A stretch of 64,000 bases of DNA, from positions 619,474 to 683,473 of the forward strand of contig JAWQFM010000011.1 of the NCBI GenBank assembly GCA_033442325.1, in the 5' to 3' direction. Positions 49,412 through 56,650 of the stretch are shown piece after piece (position 1 is the stretch's first letter; the number at the start of each line of letters is the position of its first letter). Below the pieces are notes generated by a model that was given only the letters and a program-made list of their open reading frames with translations, was not told the origin of the DNA and did not search any database. A program made the position numbers and the translations under genes. This stretch comes from Salpingoeca rosetta (taxonomy: Eukaryota > Protista > Choanoflagellata).

Positions 49412-50458
49412 TTAGCACGTCACGTCAATGTCGTGAACGACCGACGCTGCACCGGAGCACGCGATAAACTGGTAGGAGCCATCATGCCCTGGAGAACCGT
49501 TTTGTCCATCTGCACCAGACAGCCCAGTGGCCCCTTGAGAGCCAGGTTTGCCATCTCCACAACTGTGATCTTGGTTGCAGTGGCAGTGACAGCCGAGAAG
49601 GTCCAAGCAGCATGTGTGGATGAAGGCCAAGCCTCCTTTGCCTCCTTGTCCTCCAGCTCCGCCTGGGCCGCCTTTTCCGCCTTGTCCGCCATGACCACCA
49701 GAGACGCTGACAACGGTGCTGTTGGCGCTGATTGCCGTGATGCGAACTTGGCCTCCGTTGCCGCCTGCTCCGCCATTCGTTCCAGGTGTACCAGTACCGC
49801 CCTGCTTTCCGTCCTCTCCAGGAAAGCCGGGGTGGCAAGTATGATCACAGCCGTATCCTCGACCAGCATCAGCAGGATTGACTGGGGGCATTGCGCACGC
49901 GCCTTGCTTCCCGTTTGCGCCAGGAGCCCCAGGCTTCCCTTGATGTCCTGGCGTGCCACTGCCACCTGGTCCGCCCTGAGCGCTGATGGAGAGCGTACCT
50001 GACGTTTTCCGGGCGGAGATGACGATGTTGCCGGCATTGCCCCCTGGCTTATTGGTGCTACCGGCCTCTCCATTCACGTTGAACTGCACTGCGCCTTGCA
50101 CCTGGAGCACGTCATTGCACAGCAAAACAATGTTGCGGCCAGGTGATGTGTAGTTGCCACTGTTGATGATGCAGGTGTCAGCAACCACGATGAGGTCCTT
50201 GCCTGCTACGAGAGCTCCGGTCGTGACGGCCACCCTGGTTCCGTTGTAGATGACTGCGGTAGCGTTGGAGGACACCGTGGTAATGTTGGCGACGGGAAAG
50301 TGCCCGCAAGAGTCGTGCACTCGACGAGAAGTAACGACCGCACCGGTGGAGCGCCCGTGCTGCGCCACTGCCAGTGCTGCAAGCAGAAGCAGCCCCAGGT
50401 GAGCCTGCTGAAGAAGCCGAGAGAGTCCCAGGAGCATCTTGGGAGGCATCTTGAACAT
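49412..50458 (-). CDS. Intronless, probably secreted collagen-like/Gly-rich repeat protein (~348 aa)
   Basis: Hydrophobic N-terminus (LGLLLLAALAVAQ); interrupted Gly-X-Y runs (GTPGHQGKPGAPGANGKQG; PGFPGEDGKQGGTGTPGTNG; GKPGSQGATGLSGADGQNGSPGHDG); Cys-rich spacers. Confidence 0.75.
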   Translation of the reverse strand: MFKMPPKMLLGLSRLLQQAHLGLLLLAALAVAQHGRSTGAVVTSRRVHDSCGHFPVANITTVSSNATAVIYNGTRVAVTTGALVAGKDLIVVADTCIINSGNYTSPGRNIVLLCNDVLQVQGAVQFNVNGEAGSTNKPGGNAGNIVISARKTSGTLSISAQGGPGGSGTPGHQGKPGAPGANGKQGACAMPPVNPADAGRGYGCDHTCHPGFPGEDGKQGGTGTPGTNGGAGGNGGQVRITAISANSTVVSVSGGHGGQGGKGGPGGAGGQGGKGGLAFIHTCCLDLLGCHCHCNQDHSCGDGKPGSQGATGLSGADGQNGSPGHDGSYQFIACSGAASVVHDIDVTC

Positions 50459-51274
50459 CGTCGCACTTTCTTGGAAAGGGAGGAAGGTGCAAGTCGGTGA
50501 GTGCAAAGAAGAAGACCAGGTCTGTAGGCGAAGCTTGTACTTGTAATGCGCTGGCGTTGCTGATAGCGTGGAAAATGAGGCAGCTCGTTGACTTGAGCCA
50601 CCCGCCAATCTGGATCTGCTCATCAATGAGAGTCAAGCAAGAGAGTCAAGCAAGAGAGTCGATTTGTCACGGGTATCACCAAGTCTGTCCTTGCTTCCTT
50701 GTGCAACGGAAAGAACATCTGCGTTGCATGGTGCACACGCGTGTTCATGCGCATGTTTCTTCATGCCATCCTGCTCGGGAGAGGGTCGCCCAAAAGAGGT
50801 GAGGGGCACGTGACAAATGAACCACGGAGCTACGGAGGAATGACACCGCAGAAACAACAGTAAAGCAGTGGGCGCGCTAAATTGCTAGCTTGCTTGTCAA
50901 CGATTGTAGTGATGTGACATGACATGATCAACTAGATCAATCATGCTAGCACAACCAATATTGGAGCTGCTGCCACGACCAATCTTCAAATTATATCTTT
51001 GGTGCGAGCTAGGGCGGGGAGGAAAGGGAAGAACAGAAGAATGGAGGTCGAGTGACTGTGATACACTGTGCGAAGAGCATGCGGTGTTCAACCCGACTTT
51101 TGGTGAGTCACGAATTGGGCAAGGGAGGCTCAAGCCCAAAATCCATCGCTGGACTATGGACAGAAGCAAGAGGAAGCGCAACAAAGCACGACATCAGCAT
51201 TTTTCTCTGCGCGATATTGCTCATGCTTTTTTTTTTTTTTTTTGTTTTTGACAGGGACACGGAAAGGCGTGTTG

Positions 51275-54200
51275 CTATTGATCCGACTTGGCACTCGTGG
51301 ATGATGCTGAGCCAGGCCCGTCACCATGATGGGGCGTGCGTGGTGTTGTTTCGGCATCAAACACGAGAATGGCGCGCACCAGAACGCACGCGGGGTCGTC
51401 AATTGCAATCTCAGCCACGGGAATGTGGCCGGGCTCATCCCACTGCTTGAAGGTGCCAAACGGCTTGCCATCGTCGATGTCGCCTGAGGTGAAGTCGACG
51501 ACCGCGACGTGGGCGTCATGACCAGCGCGCAGCGGAAGCCCAGAGAGGTTGACGCCCAACACGGGGTAGGGGTTGGCGTACTGGATGTCGCAAACCAGCA
51601 CGACACGGTACTCCTTTCCTGAGCGGAGGTTCATGCACTTGAGGTCGTGGTGCTTGCTACTGCTGTATGTGCAAGGTCTTGTGTATGCAAGCGCGTAGTC
51701 AAGGTCTGGCGTGAAGTAGAAACCGGCGCCGTACCAGTCTGCAGGCACAAACCGTTGCTTGGTAATGAATGTGGCCAGAGCGGTGTCTGTGAGGCGGGCG
51801 AAATCGCCACCCAGAATATCAATCGCAGCTCCAAAGTTCTTGACGCCGTGAAACACGCGCTGCAGACGAATTTGAGGGTCTCTTGTCATCAACGACGTGT
51901 CAAGCAGGTCATAGTGGGATTGTCGAGTGACACGGGCGACCACATAGTCCTCTTCTCTGGTGAATTCTGGCCCGTGCCTGCCGTATTTGGGTGAAAACGT
52001 ATGGGTGATATCTGCCAGGTGGTTGCGGTAGCGGGCTTTACTGCCATCAATGGCGCCGTTGAAAGCGGCCAACTTCTGATCGCACCACGTGATGGCAGCA
52101 GCATGGACGTTATACCCAAACGGGATGAGGGGATCTGTCTCTGCAGCAGTGCGTCCGCCAGCCTGGCACAAGAGCTGTGTTGGTGTGTGTGTGTGTGTGT
52201 TAGAGGGGTGTGTTGCAGTAAATTATGTTTCAGGTAGGCATGGCTCTATAAACGACAGAAGTGCAAGTGGAGAACGTGTGTCATGCACACAAGGGAAGCA
52301 AGGCACAGTGACGCAACTCGATGCATACGCACACTCGCTTGGGCGCTCACCGTTTTGATGAGTTTGGTGTGGCTCGCTAGGTTGAGCGGAGCGATTTGCA
52401 CAGATGCACGCAAGGATAAGGTGGTTGCCACACGCTCCAAGGCATTCCGCAACTCTGGCTTGAACTTCCAGGCAGCGTCTGGTGGGCCTTGCAGCATCAG
52501 TTGCTGTTCTCGAAGCAACTGGTGCTGCCTCCGTTCCAATTCCAATCGTTGCTGTCGCTTCTTCTTGACCGCAGCATGTTGTTGCTTTGCATCCTCGTGC
52601 TGAACCCTCAAGGTCGCGTGAAGCTGCGCAAAGTTAATCCGGCTACCGCTGACAGCAAAGCAGAGACCGACCAGGGCCTCAAGAAGCTCTGGCATCGCCT
52701 GCCCGGTGACCGTGTGGTCCAGCGGCAAGTGGCGACCAGCGCGATAGCTGTCGGTCACATTGATGAAGGAAGCACCACCGTTCGCTGCGTATTCTCCGTG
52801 GTGCCAAGGGATGACGCCAAACCACACCTCCCACATCACACAGCCAAACGAGAAGACGTCCGTGTCAGCGCGCACCTTCGTTTCGAGAAGCTGCTCCGGG
52901 GATGCCCAATAAAGTGTTCCCCGAACAACAGAAACAGATGAACGATCGGCAGGCCTGATCGTGCTCAACCCAAAGTCTGTGACCTTGACCGTGCACGCTG
53001 CATCCAGCAATATGTTGGCCGACTTGAGGTCTCTGTGTACGATCTTGTGCGCGTGCAAAAACTCCATCGCGCCCGCTGTCTCGGTCAAGATGCGCATTTT
53101 GTCCACTTCCTGCAGTTGCTTCTTGTCGATGTGCAAGAAGTCGTACAAGGAGCCGTTGTCTGCCCAGCTCAGGACGACCGACATTGTCCTGCTCTTGTCA
53201 TCGTAACACAGGCCGAGAAACGTCACGATGTTCGGGTGCCGCATGGAAGCGAAGATAAGCAGCTCTCGTCGCACCCACTTCTCTTTGTCTTCGGCGGCAC
53301 CAAGATCGTCATCCAGCAATTCCTTGAGCCTCGGCTTGCGCGATAGATCCACCTCCTTCAGCGCCACTTTGTGCCCGGCGAGTCGAGCCTCAAAGAGCCG
53401 TCCGTAACCCCCAGAAACGGGCCTGTCTGCATTGTTTGTCGCCCGCTTCTTGTCCACAAAAAGGGAGGCGTCCATGTCCAAATTCAGCATAGTCTCTGAA
53501 CACATTGTTGTTGTTGCGACCCAAAAACATCCGTGAGACACGAATAAAGGCAAGCTGTGAGTAAATTGCGTTGGGAGGGGGGAACGCGTGTCTGCATGAG
53601 TGTGCATATGTGCATGTGTGCGTGTGCGTGTGCGTGTGCGTGTGCGTGTGCATGAATGCGCATGAATGTGCATGTGCGCACGTGCGTGTGCATGTGTGCA
53701 CGTGCGTGTGTGTGTACGTGGTGTCGTCGGGCGTTACCCCTCGTTGTTGGCGAACCAACTGAAAGACTGAGCATCGTGCAGCACTTACCGATGCGTTGTT
53801 CAAGCGCACGCTGGGCGTCTGAGACATGCCTGTCGGGGTCAGATTCCGATTGCTGTCCTGATGCGGCAAATGGCAAGCAACCGCGTGATCGATGTGCACA
53901 TTCACGTGAATGGACGCATCGTGGACTCTGCTGCCTCCCAGAACCAGCAGCAGCGAGCATGACACCGCCATGGGAAATACCTCTGAGCGCCTCTTCATCA
54001 GACCGGTCCCCGGCAACTGTTGCAGCTGGACACACGCCCTGGTCTGATGAAAGCAAAGGCACGGTGTGCAGTGTGGTTGATCCATGCAAGGATGAGTACT
54101 ACGAGGAGAACTGTGATGTAAAATTTGTTTTCACACTTAACGGTGGTTGCGGGCGCAAAACCGTGCAGCAGAGAGAGCCCTCGTGTCGTACTCAGGGCTT

Positions 54201-56414
54201 TGATGGCTTCTTGCAAGTCCTGCTTGTCTTTCTGTAACCTCTGAATCATCGCCTCTGACGTCGTCGACATGATGGACGAATTAAGCAAAATCAAGTGGTG
54301 AGAAACAGGGCCGAGGAGGGCTGCTCATAGGCACCAACACAATGCCTCAAACAGCGCAAGTGCACGGCGAGCAGGCAAGCACGCTTACCCTGTTTCTTGT
54401 TGATATCCTCCAGCTCTTGCTTGTCTTGCATCAGATTGTCCGTCGATACGCCTGAGTCACGAGCAATTCCATCACGCAGGCAAGTTACAAGATAGATAAA
54501 ATAAGCTGGCGTCACCACCGTCACCCTGACATATCCACAAAAGCTGCGTGGGCGCCCACAACTGGTGCAGCACATGTTCAAGTATTAATCGACCATCTTG
54601 CGCCTGCTGGGGCTCGGAGTTGGGTTTGGGCAAGGAAGCGGCGAGGTGCGGCGAAGGAGTGTCAGGTGCCAGCCTCGGCTGAGCCACCAAATCAATCGTG
54701 GCGCCCTTGCTGACTTGGTCCCTAAAAGCAGCAACCAAACACGCAGTGTCAGTGGGAAGGGGAAGAGAGGGAGGTGGGAGAAGAGGGAGGTGGGAGAAGT
54801 AGCAAGGTTGTAGCTGTGTGTTTCTAGTGGAAGGCAAAGACATGCGCGAGTGCACTGTTGTGAGCCGGTAAATGAGAGCGCACGTCACCAACGATCTTTG
54901 TTCGCGCTTTCAGCTTGCATGCAGGCAACGTACATGTCGAGGCTGACTTCCGAGCCGGAAGCCTCCACTTGACGCAACGCTTCGCGTCCACGGTGGGTGA
55001 TCTTTCGGTTGTGGTGCAGCCTGTGGTGGGCACGAAGAACACAGACGTTAGGATCGCATTTGCGTATGGGATGGGAGGTGCTGCGAGCATATATGCGCGT
55101 GTTTGTGTGTTTGACTCTGTTTGTATCCATTTCACACGCAGAGAGAGAGAGAGAGAGACAGTGAGAGAGACAGTGAGAGAGAGTGAGAGAGACAGTGAGA
55201 GAGAGACAGTGAGAAAGAGAGAGAGACAGTGAGAGAGAGAGAGAGATTTACACACACACACACACACAGATACAAGCATGCACACGCAAGAATACACACA
55301 GTGCCAGACGCACGAGATTATGGAGAGGCGAGGATTCTTCCGCAGTACATCTGCCAGGCAGAGAGCGCCGTCATCGTCGACATCATTGCTGGCCAGTCTG
55401 GAACAGAATGAAAGCGCAAGCAAGCGCGTCGGCAGGCACACGGGCAGCATGGTGAGCTTGCGGTACCCAGCACATGAAACAGAACGCACCACCACCACCA
55501 CCACCACAAGAGTACGAGCAGTGTTGACTCAACAAGAAGATACCCCCTGAACGCCTGCTTGCTTGAGCTGTACAACGTGCACTGCCGCACACCACTCACG
55601 AGAGGGTGGTGAGGCGGGGGTGGATTAACAGCACTCGTGCAAGGGCCTTGACGCCGGCTGTCGTGATGTTGTTGTTGGCCAAGCTGAGGGAGGTTACAGG
55701 GTTGTGCGTGCAGCAATAACAGAAGCAAACATATAGAGAGCCAGGATGAGTTGGTGAGTTGGCGAAGGATGGCGCGTGTTCGGAAAGTGGGAAGAGGCAC
55801 AGGGAAGGCGCATAAGGCACGACAGCAGCGAAATGCCCGCAAAATGACGTTGGGACGCTGAGACGTTGAGACATCGAGACCTTGCATCGGCAAGCGGCAC
55901 ACACACACACACACACACGCACGCACGCACGCACACACACACACACGCACACGCACACACACACACACACACAACACGCACACACGAATAAAACGCACTC
56001 CAGCCAAGTGATGCGATCGTTGTGTCGGAGGGCTTCTGCGATGACGTTGACACCTGCGTCATCAATGTTCATTCCACTCAGGCTGCAAACCATGTCACGG
56101 TGGGGAGAGCATACCAAAAACCAATCGGCAAGGTGCAAGGACGAGGTGAGGAGGTCACCGGAGCACCGGGTGGCTGTGACGTACTGCAGAAGCAAAACAA
56201 CGACACAAACAGAACAAAGGCGCAGACGGCTTGCTTGCCGGCTTGCCCCTACAAACCAGACCCAGCACTCCCTGTTTCCTTCCTTCCTTTGCTTCCCAAC
56301 ACGCACGCACATCACGTGGGTGTTGCTGCCGTTCGTGGCCATGTCTCGAACGGTCTTCTTTGCAGCATCCTTGAGGTTGCTGGCCTCCAGCTGCTTCGCC
56401 AGCGTCTGATCCAT
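51275..56414 (-). CDS. LRR - linker/coiled-coil - TKL-type Ser/Thr kinase - PARP-like ADP-ribosyltransferase fusion, ~957 aa; predicted exons 56414-56311, 56082-55999, 55683-55600, 55397-55314, 55020-54934, 54721-54594, 54451-54389, 54254-54192, 54043-53981, 53857-53789, 53495-52351, 52174-51275
   Basis: All 11 junctions GT-AG and phase-compatible (2874 nt in total). LRRs in 84-nt exons. Kinase VALK, RHPNIV, HRDLKSANIL, DFG, GTLYWASPE, DVFSFG. ART VFHG, WYGAGFYFT..YA..Y, VLVCDI, GHDAH, EIAI. Confidence 0.78.
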
Positions 56415-56650
56415 AGTGAGCTGGTGAGATGGTGGCGTGTCGATGCCTTTGTCTGTGTTGAGGTTGCTCGTTTGTCTTTGTGTGGGTTGTGTGCTTGTTG
56501 TGTGCTTCTTGGCCAAGTGCGCTTGTCGCCCCATCTCTCCCATCGCTGGACACATCGAAAACCAATCAGTTGCCTTGCTGGCTGGGAAGTGAGCCAAAGG
56601 TTCCTCTTCTTCGAGACCTCGAATGCATGGCGACAGCACGACAGACAGAG

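Follow-up and report, generated by a model that had tools for sequence, protein, structure and literature searches.

A probable TKL-type kinase joined to a divergent PARP-like domain in a Salpingoeca rosetta gene family, with a plausible leucine-rich repeat head in the copy studied

Overview of the locus

In the choanoflagellate Salpingoeca rosetta, a protein kinase and a PARP-type domain are fused and share a single reading frame, which is interrupted by a conserved phase-0 intron. The copy studied here lies on the minus strand of a 64,000-nt stretch of genomic DNA (the window), between positions 56414 and 51275. It is one member of an S. rosetta multigene family whose common product consists of a short N-terminal cap, ribonuclease inhibitor (RI)-type leucine-rich repeats (LRRs), a low-complexity linker, a coiled coil, a Ser/Thr kinase of probable TKL type, a second coil and a divergent PARP-family domain; in this copy the LRR exons probably belong to the same mRNA, and the last domain would transfer ADP-ribose from NAD+. 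GenBank annotates the locus as two genes, one encoding a 225-aa LRR protein and the other an 808-aa "serine/threonine protein kinase" (XP_004994539.1, P0004), and we reproduced both models exactly from the genomic sequence.

Gene model

The original prediction joined 12 exons through GT-AG junctions into one ORF of ~957 aa. When this chain was rebuilt, it gave 2874 nt (957 aa plus a stop codon) with no internal stops and GT...AG at all introns, and 9 of its 11 junctions are also present in the GenBank models. The parts described (LRRs, Pro-rich segment, kinase, Gln/Arg-rich segment and C-terminal domain) and the motif coordinates were all recovered as predicted. Exon 1 (56414-56311, 104 nt) begins with the ATG at 56414 (MDQTLAKQLEASNL...) and ends in phase 2. 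Starting at Met1, it lines up with the N-terminal ends of the paralogs P0151, P0001 and P0008, in which its size and phase are identical, and its junction also occurs in the GenBank 225-aa model, the start of which was placed at 56555, in frame and 47 codons upstream.

The LRR exons follow at 56082-55999 (84 nt, phase 2-2, encoding a single RI-type repeat of 28 aa), 55683-55600 and 55397-55314 (84 nt each, both found in the paralog exon plan and in the GenBank 225-aa model), and 55020-54934 (87 nt, the last repeat plus a cap, with the donor GTACGT at 9.7 bits). Read directly, the sequence contains four tandem repeats of 28/29 aa with the pattern LxxLxLxxNxI..G...LA..L, one per 84/87-nt exon, in agreement with the predicted number of about four. 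The region is 45% identical to the LRR region of P0009 over 108 aa (E 4e-28), and 84-nt phase 2-2 exons were found in all five mapped paralogs. Paralog LRRs match PF13516 (LRR_6) with E values down to 2.6e-11, and the LRR matches recorded for the GenBank 225-aa product are weak or faint; the LRRs are the part that diverges most between paralogs.

A Pro-rich transition exon (54721-54594, 16% Pro), which changes the phase from 2 to 1 and has an uncertain 3' end, is followed by four phase 1-1 coiled-coil cassette exons at 54451-54389, 54254-54192 and 54043-53981 (63 nt each) and at 53857-53789 (69 nt). All four are contained in P0004, 49% of their residues are E, K, R, Q or D, and the number of such exons varies among paralogs. 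The kinase exon (53495-52351, 1145 nt) encodes the kinase and the Gln/Arg-rich second coil, and the last exon (52174-51275) encodes 299 aa comprising the PARP-like domain and a 25-aa tail, with the stop codon. No signal peptide or transmembrane segment was seen in the 957-aa model, as had been claimed: the highest Kyte-Doolittle 19-mer value was 1.63, within strands of the PARP-like domain.

The kinase and its fusion to the C-terminal domain

The kinase matches the Pfam families PF00069 (Pkinase, E 1.5e-42) and PF07714 (E 8.6e-40). The motifs VALK (residues 320-323), HRDLKSAN (430), DFG (450) and SPE (475) are present, with K323 encoded at 53358-53356, the HRD Asp (D432) at 53031-53029 and the DFG Asp at 52977-52975. 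Judged from the sequence, all catalytic motifs are intact; in the Gly-rich loop, the first Gly alone is replaced. The best solved relatives are a mixture of TKL kinases (CTR1, RAF and MAP3K12) and tyrosine kinases (EGFR and JAK2), HRDLKSAN is the Ser/Thr form of the motif, and NCBI names the paralogs "TKL protein kinase". The predicted fusion of an intact kinase, probably of the TKL type, to an ADP-ribosyltransferase (ART)-type domain is supported.

The S. rosetta genome contains at least 22 copies that combine a kinase with a divergent PARP-type domain, usually with an LRR head, and these copies are partly clustered (contigs C4, C23, C11, C21 and C26). In 16 of 20 paralogous loci, the kinase and PARP-like parts are collinear and are separated by an intron at the same place; the C-terminal exon begins in phase 0 with LL..AGGR in all five mapped paralogs, and the GenBank model carries the same junction between the kinase and C-terminal exons. 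Over the kinase, coil and C-terminal exons, P0004 is a 100% match. The combination also appears in single transcriptome ORFs of other choanoflagellates, namely Microstomoeca roanoka (P0015 and P0023, with ankyrin repeats, kinase and C-terminal domain) and Didymoeca costata (e.g., P0027, with kinase and C-terminal domain). The N-terminal heads of the family are interchangeable and include LRR, ankyrin, TPR, WD40 and Roc-COR types; in the paralog P0006, LRR, Roc, COR and TIR domains precede the PARP-like domain. A distant relative from Paulinella (P0026) joins a SidE_PDE domain (E 1e-29) to a kinase and a PARP domain.

The C-terminal domain as a member of the PARP fold

No Pfam PARP match was obtained for the C-terminal domain of this copy even at E <= 1. 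It does not reach the gathering threshold of PF00644 (26.7 bits); paralogs score 14-25 bits, and the threshold is exceeded in distant relatives, by P0026 with 34 bits and by P0025 with 28 bits. Because this copy has no Pfam-level score, its homology to PARPs is demonstrated only via profiles and intermediates (E 1e-8). A family profile (A1) matched only PARPs in the PDB, and with a wider profile (A2) all 40 matches were PARPs, including PARP13 (E 1e-8) and PARP12 (7e-6). The nearest protein-language-model neighbours of the domain are likewise PARP clusters. Comparison with PARP folds, which had been proposed as a check, gave a consistent picture: the AlphaFold2 model (pLDDT 76, pTM 0.79) has an ART fold, and PARPs were the top matches in both structural searches. 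In VIA-align, the top 17 matches were all PARP-type domains (Z 9.7-13.2; PARP10 13.2, PARP15 13.1 and PARP13 12.1), followed by diphtheria-toxin-type domains at Z <= 7; Foldseek returned 234 PDB matches at E <= 1e-3, with PARPs making up all of the 50 matches listed.

The predicted FHG His and the candidate catalytic Glu were confirmed at 51850-51848 (His767) and 51412-51410 (Glu913) and, together with Tyr811 (51718-51716), occupy the canonical H-Y-E places. In the paralog alignment, H767, G768, Y811 and the F are invariant, and E913 is kept in 13 of 14 paralogs. HMMER alignments pair the family His with the PARP12 His, and GxGxYF with GKG(I/S)YF; the family Glu aligns opposite the third triad position, which is Ile in PARP12 and Val in PARP13. 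Among the best 150 family representatives, the triad residues are retained in 108/122 (H), 128/128 (Y) and 81/85 (E) cases. The modelled C-terminal domain is thus assigned to the PARP/ARTD fold, with H-Y-E at the catalytic-triad positions and kept across the family.

The domain may alternatively be a pseudo-PARP that serves as a binding or scaffold module, as in PARP13, TASOR and plant RCD1/SRO, with the kinase as the only catalytic unit; we regard this as unlikely. PARP13, which is inactive, is the best sequence match, and the structural matches include, by their PDB titles, the pseudo-PARP of TASOR and the PARP domains of RCD1/SRO1. Eight residues after the triad Tyr, canonical PARPs have the Ser that hydrogen-bonds nicotinamide (Ser904 of PARP1). 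The alignments show Ser there in PARP13 and PARP12, but Ala in this copy and in 111 of 127 family members among the best 150 representatives. This copy also has a 12-aa insertion in a long, low-confidence loop adjoining the NAD+ site, and the lack of a Pfam match is in keeping with a pseudo-PARP as well. However, the known pseudo-PARPs lack His, Glu or both, whereas this copy and about 90-100% of the family, distant protists included, keep H-Y-E, a retention that indicates purifying selection on catalysis. Furthermore, Paulinella P0026 joins the domain to a phosphodiesterase domain of the SidE type, which in Legionella acts on ADP-ribosylated ubiquitin.

The probable link between the LRR head and the kinase

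The predicted joining of the LRRs to the kinase and ART domain in one product is likely. The exon-phase plan of the fused model is identical to that of five mapped full-length paralogs (P0151, P0008, P0001, P0010 and P0005), each with a transition exon that likewise shifts the phase from 2 to 1, and the fused model aligns from Met1 with P0151, P0008, P0001 and P0010. Against it stand the GenBank split and the donor after 54594 (GTCGAT), which scores -0.5 bits (family mean 7.6, minimum 3.0) and is absent from the GenBank models. The acceptor at 54721 (6.8 bits) is stronger than the acceptor at 54678 used by GenBank, from which the 225-aa model runs to a stop at TAA 54587-54585. Alternative in-phase ends of the transition exon occur at 54531 (GTCAGG, 3.8 bits, 79-nt intron) and at 54525/54516 (GTGACG), and the linker exon offers no strong in-phase donor. 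With such a weak donor and no strong in-phase substitute, this copy could be losing its LRR link.

The locus might accordingly yield two separate products (225-aa LRR-only and 808-aa kinase-PARP-like), or be a decaying copy in which a weakened donor has cost the LRR link and the fused protein is not made. The exactly reproducible GenBank models and a linking donor far below the family range point in that direction, and protein searches of a 5.8-billion-protein collection found no transcript-derived form of greater length. Yet the two GenBank coding sequences are on the same strand and are separated by 9 nt, too short a gap to hold a terminator and a promoter. Two segments, residues 1-42 of the 808-aa model and the final 30 residues of the 225-aa model, are rich in Cys, Arg and Trp and lack a counterpart in any paralog; they lie in the same frame, with one TAA between them. 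The phase plan shared with the five paralogs also speaks against separate products, and GTATTT at 53980, a donor accepted in the GenBank model, is equally weak (-0.6 bits). On balance, we think that separation or decay is probably not the explanation, and that the LRR exons plausibly belong, on the exon and phase evidence, to the same mRNA as the kinase and PARP-like exons in this copy.

Comparison with known systems

The domain shares with PARP/ARTD proteins (PF00644, above all the mono-ART clade PARP12/PARP13 and PARP10/14/15) the ART fold with H-Y-E on the canonical strands and, in the window gene, the FHG, GxGxYF and Y-x-x-x-Y motifs; as in mono-ART PARPs, the helical regulatory domain is absent. 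It differs from them in falling under Pfam detection in this copy, in the replacement of the pocket Ser by Ala, in a conserved N-terminal extension (AGGRT, H.F.PKY) specific to this family, and in its fusion to a protein kinase. A survey of PARPs makes no mention of a kinase-PARP architecture (PMC4245714).

LRRK/ROCO proteins are similar in being cytosolic, in beginning with a repeat head, in carrying a kinase of the TKL group (a probable one here) and in ending with another domain, and the paralog P0006 has LRRs with Roc-COR. P0004, however, had no match to a Roc or COR domain, and only about 128 linker/coil residues separate the LRRs from the kinase; the window gene has coiled coils instead of Roc-COR, and a C-terminal ART rather than WD40. 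The logic of NLR/TIR-NLR proteins and vertebrate antiviral PARPs is comparable in that variable repeat heads are joined to putatively NAD+-using effector domains; the present family is expanded in one lineage, and TIR occurs in one paralog. The family has no NACHT/NB-ARC ATPase, and the likeness is one of architecture only. Paulinella P0026, with SidE_PDE, kinase and PARP domains, recalls the Legionella SidE-type combination of ART and phosphodiesterase. A PDE domain is missing from the window gene, and the ART of SidE belongs to the R-S-E-type mARTs rather than to the H-Y-E PARPs.

Possible function and significance

The C-terminal domain is expected to transfer ADP-ribose from NAD+, as a single unit or as a chain. 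By binding ligands or partners and by oligomerising, the LRR head and coiled coils may control both enzyme domains, and phosphorylation and ADP-ribosylation would then be coupled outputs. For the predicted immune or stress switch, the arguments are analogy and hints from the family, namely its expanded copy number, the exchange of repeat heads and a paralog that bears a TIR domain; a defence or stress-sensing role is the most attractive reading of the expansion and modular heads and is speculative.

It is nearly an even question whether the protein is instead an ordinary intracellular signalling enzyme acting in cell-state, cytoskeletal or DNA-damage/stress pathways, with the expansion reflecting growth of the choanoflagellate kinome rather than defence. 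Large lineage-specific kinase expansions are generally known in choanoflagellates, and heads made of LRRs or ankyrin repeats are general-purpose modules for protein binding. PARPs, moreover, work in many non-immune pathways (PMC4245714). The partly clustered set of at least 22 copies, the exchange of N-terminal heads, the TIR domain adjoining a PARP-like domain in one paralog and the marked divergence of the LRRs fit this less well; such features are typical of conflict systems, although they are no proof of one. At its most ambitious, the defence reading would define a novel class, found in choanoflagellates and more sparsely in other protists, of cytosolic single-chain receptors in which a TKL kinase and an active PARP-type domain with H-Y-E are under the control of a variable repeat head (LRR, ankyrin, TPR, WD40 or Roc-COR). 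The S. rosetta family would then be an innate defence repertoire that acts through ADP-ribosylation gated by phosphorylation, or by consuming NAD+, and would form a counterpart, older than animals, to the logic of NLR/TIR proteins and antiviral PARPs; we hold this full version to be quite improbable.

PARPs and LRR-linked kinases are both central in animal stress and antiviral signalling, and we know of no case in which the two are joined in one chain. For the closest relatives of animals, we found no published description of an LRR/kinase/PARP-type layout, and the family would have escaped domain-based surveys, since this copy is not recognised by Pfam and the scanned paralogs are below threshold. 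Among these relatives, S. rosetta serves as the principal genetic model, and the family of at least 22 genes therefore offers a candidate for defence or stress sensing before the metazoans that can be tested directly. If the domain is inactive, or the family serves ordinary signalling, the finding shrinks to an improvement of annotation. The kinase-PARP family provides a natural system for cross-talk between phosphorylation and ADP-ribosylation inside one protein, and for enzymology it constitutes a new PARP subfamily in which the pocket Ser is replaced by Ala and the triad looks intact.

Predicted exon structure of the gene

The DNA of the window is G+C-rich and eukaryotic in character, with introns that carry CA/GT microsatellites, one of them at 53588-53626 within the intron preceding the kinase exon. 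On the minus strand (56414-51275), we rebuilt the 12-exon chain that the original prediction had joined into a single ORF, and it held together: 2874 nt encode 957 aa with zero internal stops, and all introns are GT...AG. The product has a 34-aa N-terminal cap, four RI-type LRRs of 28/29 aa each (one per 84/87-nt phase 2-2 exon), a Pro-rich linker exon (54721-54594), four charged-residue-rich coil exons (63/69 nt, phase 1-1), a 1145-nt exon encoding the protein kinase and a Gln/Arg-rich segment, and a 900-nt last exon encoding the PARP-like domain. Neither a signal peptide nor a membrane segment was found in the 957-aa model, as had been anticipated. Exon chains of 1069-1134 aa, produced by an ab initio dynamic program on codon usage, retained spurious intronic ORFs, and the paralog-guided model was preferred.

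The LRR gene annotated in GenBank begins at ATG 56555, also on the minus strand and 47 in-frame codons 5' of ATG 56414. The shorter start at 56414 is more likely, because the gene's three closest LRR paralogs (P0151, P0001 and P0008) start at the equivalent position. The downstream neighbor on the same strand (49412-50626) is an ORF rich in Gly, with runs of collagen-like GxxG; its hydrophobic leader (MFKMPPKMLLGLSRLL...) is internal to the listed 404-aa ORF, and a nearby GenBank gene encodes 287 aa with no Pfam match.

The kinase and its fusion to the PARP-like domain

The kinase was predicted to be intact, and this was confirmed by a Pkinase match at E 1.5e-42 and by the presence of all four motifs, namely VALK (K323), HRDLKSAN (D432), DFG and SPE. 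Its closest solved relatives are EGFR, CTR1, RAF, JAK2 and MAP3K12. The predicted kinase-PARP fusion is solid, because 16 of the 20 paralogous loci have the two parts collinear and an intron at the same position, because the GenBank model also uses the junction between them (52351 to 52174), and because single ORFs in transcriptome assemblies of the choanoflagellates Microstomoeca roanoka and Didymoeca costata contain both.

The C-terminal PARP-like domain

Searched alone, the last exon gave no Pfam match and, as a single sequence, no PDB match; the PARP assignment came instead from a profile built on the paralogs and from a fold search. In an alignment of 14 S. rosetta copies, FHG and GxGxYFT are invariant and an AE(I/V)(V/I) strand is near-invariant. 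An AlphaFold2 model built from this alignment (pLDDT 76, pTM 0.79) gave 234 Foldseek matches in the PDB at E <= 1e-3, and all 50 of those listed are PARP catalytic domains, so that the domain models as the ART fold for which this check had been proposed. With a second, all-against-all structure aligner, the top 17 matches were PARP-type domains (Z 9.7-13.2), including PARP10, 15, tankyrase, 13, 3, 1, 4, 2, 16, RCD1, SRO1 and TASOR, and diphtheria-toxin-type enzymes ranked after them (Z <= 7). The 14-copy profile matched only PARP13, PARP4 and PARP16 in the PDB, and weakly, and a 49-sequence profile that included distant relatives returned 40 matches, all PARPs, with a best E of 1e-8. Neighbors identified by a protein language model were also PARP clusters. 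In the profile-PDB alignments, the family His is aligned with the catalytic His of PARP12, and GxGxYF with GKG(I/S)YF; the family Glu lies opposite Ile in PARP12 and Val in PARP13, the residues at the third position of their triads. The fold, the PARP-only profile matches, the aligned positions and the language-model neighbors together support the proposed assignment of a PARP fold with an H-Y-E triad (His767, Tyr811 and Glu913 in the model), and the codons for His and Glu are at precisely the predicted coordinates (51848-51850 and 51410-51412).

Among the best 150 representatives, the triad is retained almost everywhere it is covered (H in 108/122, Y in 128/128 and E in 81/85), which favors an active enzyme over a pseudo-PARP. 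The PARP assignment has two caveats. The nicotinamide-contacting Ser of canonical PARPs is replaced by Ala in 111 of 127 family members. The studied copy also has a 12-aa insertion (region TDTALATFITKQRFVPA; minus strand, ~51725-51775, model residues ~786-802) in the loop before GAGFYF, beside the NAD+ site; it is missing from 13 paralogs and falls in a low-confidence, poorly modelled stretch. An unspliced mini-intron was rejected as its origin, there being no donor at a workable distance.

One gene or two

Whether the LRRs belong to the same gene is the part of the prediction that was upheld with reservations: the exon-phase plan matches five paralogs, but GenBank splits the locus and the linking donor is very weak. 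In GenBank GCA_000188695.1 the locus is annotated as two genes, one for an LRR protein of 225 aa and one for XP_004994539.1 (P0004) of 808 aa, with CDSs 9 nt apart on the same strand. We reproduced both models exactly; jointly they contain 9 of the 11 predicted junctions, and their differences from the 12-exon model are confined to the surroundings of the linker exon. There, GenBank uses an acceptor at 54678 (4.7 bits, vs. 6.8 for 54721) that shifts the frame. The 225-aa gene then stops at TAA 54587-54585, and the kinase gene restarts in the same frame at an ATG 9 nt on, so that the two segments (54585-54678 and 54389-54575, minus strand) form one frame with a single TAA and 9 nt between the genes. 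The residues created in this way are rich in Cys, Arg and Trp and correspond to nothing in any of the paralogs, and the split looks like a single gene model broken at an unrecognized intron. An assembly error in the linker was considered and rejected, since GenBank GL832964.1 is identical to the window on both sides of the 39 nt (53588-53626) that were left out of the comparison.

The 957-aa model is collinear from its first Met with the paralogs P0151, P0008, P0001 and P0010. The five exon-mapped paralogs (these four and P0005) follow a common scheme. Exon 1 ends in phase 2, the LRRs are on 84-nt exons of phase 2-2, and a single transition exon changes the phase from 2 to 1; coil exons of phase 1-1 then lead to a kinase exon that is entered in phase 1 and left in phase 0, and the last exon, of phase 0, opens with LL..AGGR. 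It is this homology of the whole exon-phase plan that supports the LRR link. The link is weakest at the linker-exon donor of the 12-exon model, GTCGAT: it scores -0.5 bits, whereas 69 donors across the family average 7.6 bits and none falls below 3.0. Of 74 family donors, 3 have C at +3 and 4 lack G at +5. Other in-phase donors are available at 54530 (GTCAGG, 3.8 bits, giving a 79-nt intron) and, as GTGACG, at 54524 and 54515, and one donor accepted within the GenBank model is as weak as GTCGAT; the fused frame is therefore reachable in several ways. The locus almost certainly descends from a gene in which LRR, kinase and PARP domains were fused. The studied copy probably still yields a fused mRNA, although it may be losing its LRR-kinase link.

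In a collection of 5.8 billion proteins, queries with P0004 residues 43-135, the linker-exon ORF and the kinase N-terminus returned P0004 only, or nothing, in place of longer or fragmentary transcript-derived forms. The linker/coil junction and the control kinase/PARP junction were both without a match in metagenome contigs, which says nothing about either junction, as this collection contains no S. rosetta cDNA. Sequencing runs whose RNA status was guessed shared 0.50-0.57 of sampled words, near the exon share of the 12-exon model (~0.58) and higher than that of kinase-PARP alone (~0.44), a weak comparison on which the conclusion about the LRR link does not rest.

Paralogs in S. rosetta and relatives elsewhere

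The S. rosetta genome contains at least 22 paralogous copies of the C-terminal exon, and LRR, kinase and PARP-like domains occur together in at least eight annotated S. rosetta proteins, whose names go no further than "TKL protein kinase" or "serine/threonine protein kinase". The gene models of the studied locus are already public, and UniRef already labels one standalone paralog "PARP catalytic domain-containing protein". We found no description of a kinase-PARP or LRR-kinase-PARP architecture in the literature, and a eukaryote-wide PARP survey makes no mention of either (PMC4245714).

The LRR is the most divergent part among paralogs (34-45% identity, vs. 42-55% for the kinase). The most similar LRR paralog (P0151/P0009, XP_004994525/4) lies on the same contig at C11:606000-615500, ~5 kb before the window start and ~55 kb from the studied gene, and a third copy on that contig, P0008, is at C11:829300-838700. 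Two loci on another contig, L015 (C21:1036400-1045800) and L019 (C21:969000-978500), each contain the coil segment twice, and in L015 the end of the kinase C-lobe is duplicated as well; given their near-identical C-terminal domains, the two loci appear to be recent segmental duplicates. The paralog P0006 (XP_004996163.1, 1728 aa; L014, C4:885000-894500) has an LRR-Roc-COR-TIR-PARP-like order and no kinase, and from its domain matches is a ROCO-type protein with two predicted NAD+-using domains in one chain.

Of 1.84 billion representatives, 564 matched in a profile search at E <= 1e-3. Among the matches listed, 28 of the 56 proteins of at least 450 aa have a kinase; other domains N-terminal to the PARP-like domain include ankyrin, TPR, WD40, MORN, thioredoxin, COR and SidE-type phosphodiesterase, in organisms such as other choanoflagellates, Paulinella and Apiculatamorpha. 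In P0026, a 1267-aa protein from a Paulinella chromatophora transcriptome, a SidE-type phosphodiesterase (E 1e-29) is joined to a kinase and to a PARP domain scoring 34 bits, a pairing of phosphodiesterase and ART that recalls the phosphoribosyl-ubiquitination chemistry of Legionella SidE.

Possible function

In the 957-aa model, a single cytosolic chain contains two catalytic domains that look intact, with flanking coils and a short N-terminal LRR head. The LRRs and coils may bind a partner or ligand and thereby drive oligomerization, and the outputs of the kinase and ART would then be coupled, or one of the two would regulate the other. The ART would use NAD+, and an H-Y-E triad alone is compatible with both mono- and poly-ADP-ribosylation. 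A role in defence or stress is suggested by analogy and is not a result; it draws on the copy number and clustering of the family, its exchangeable heads, the TIR domain of one paralog and the divergence of the LRRs.

A second PARP expansion

S. rosetta also has a second PARP expansion of ~10 loci, distinct from the kinase-linked family, at C13:1698708-1699184, C32:33875-34354, C20:1226891-1227358, C24:1202293-1202766, C2:37708-38178 and others. Their open frames are 367-405 aa long, and the stretch that matches PF00644 (positions 38-190, scoring above the cut-off) contains no stops.
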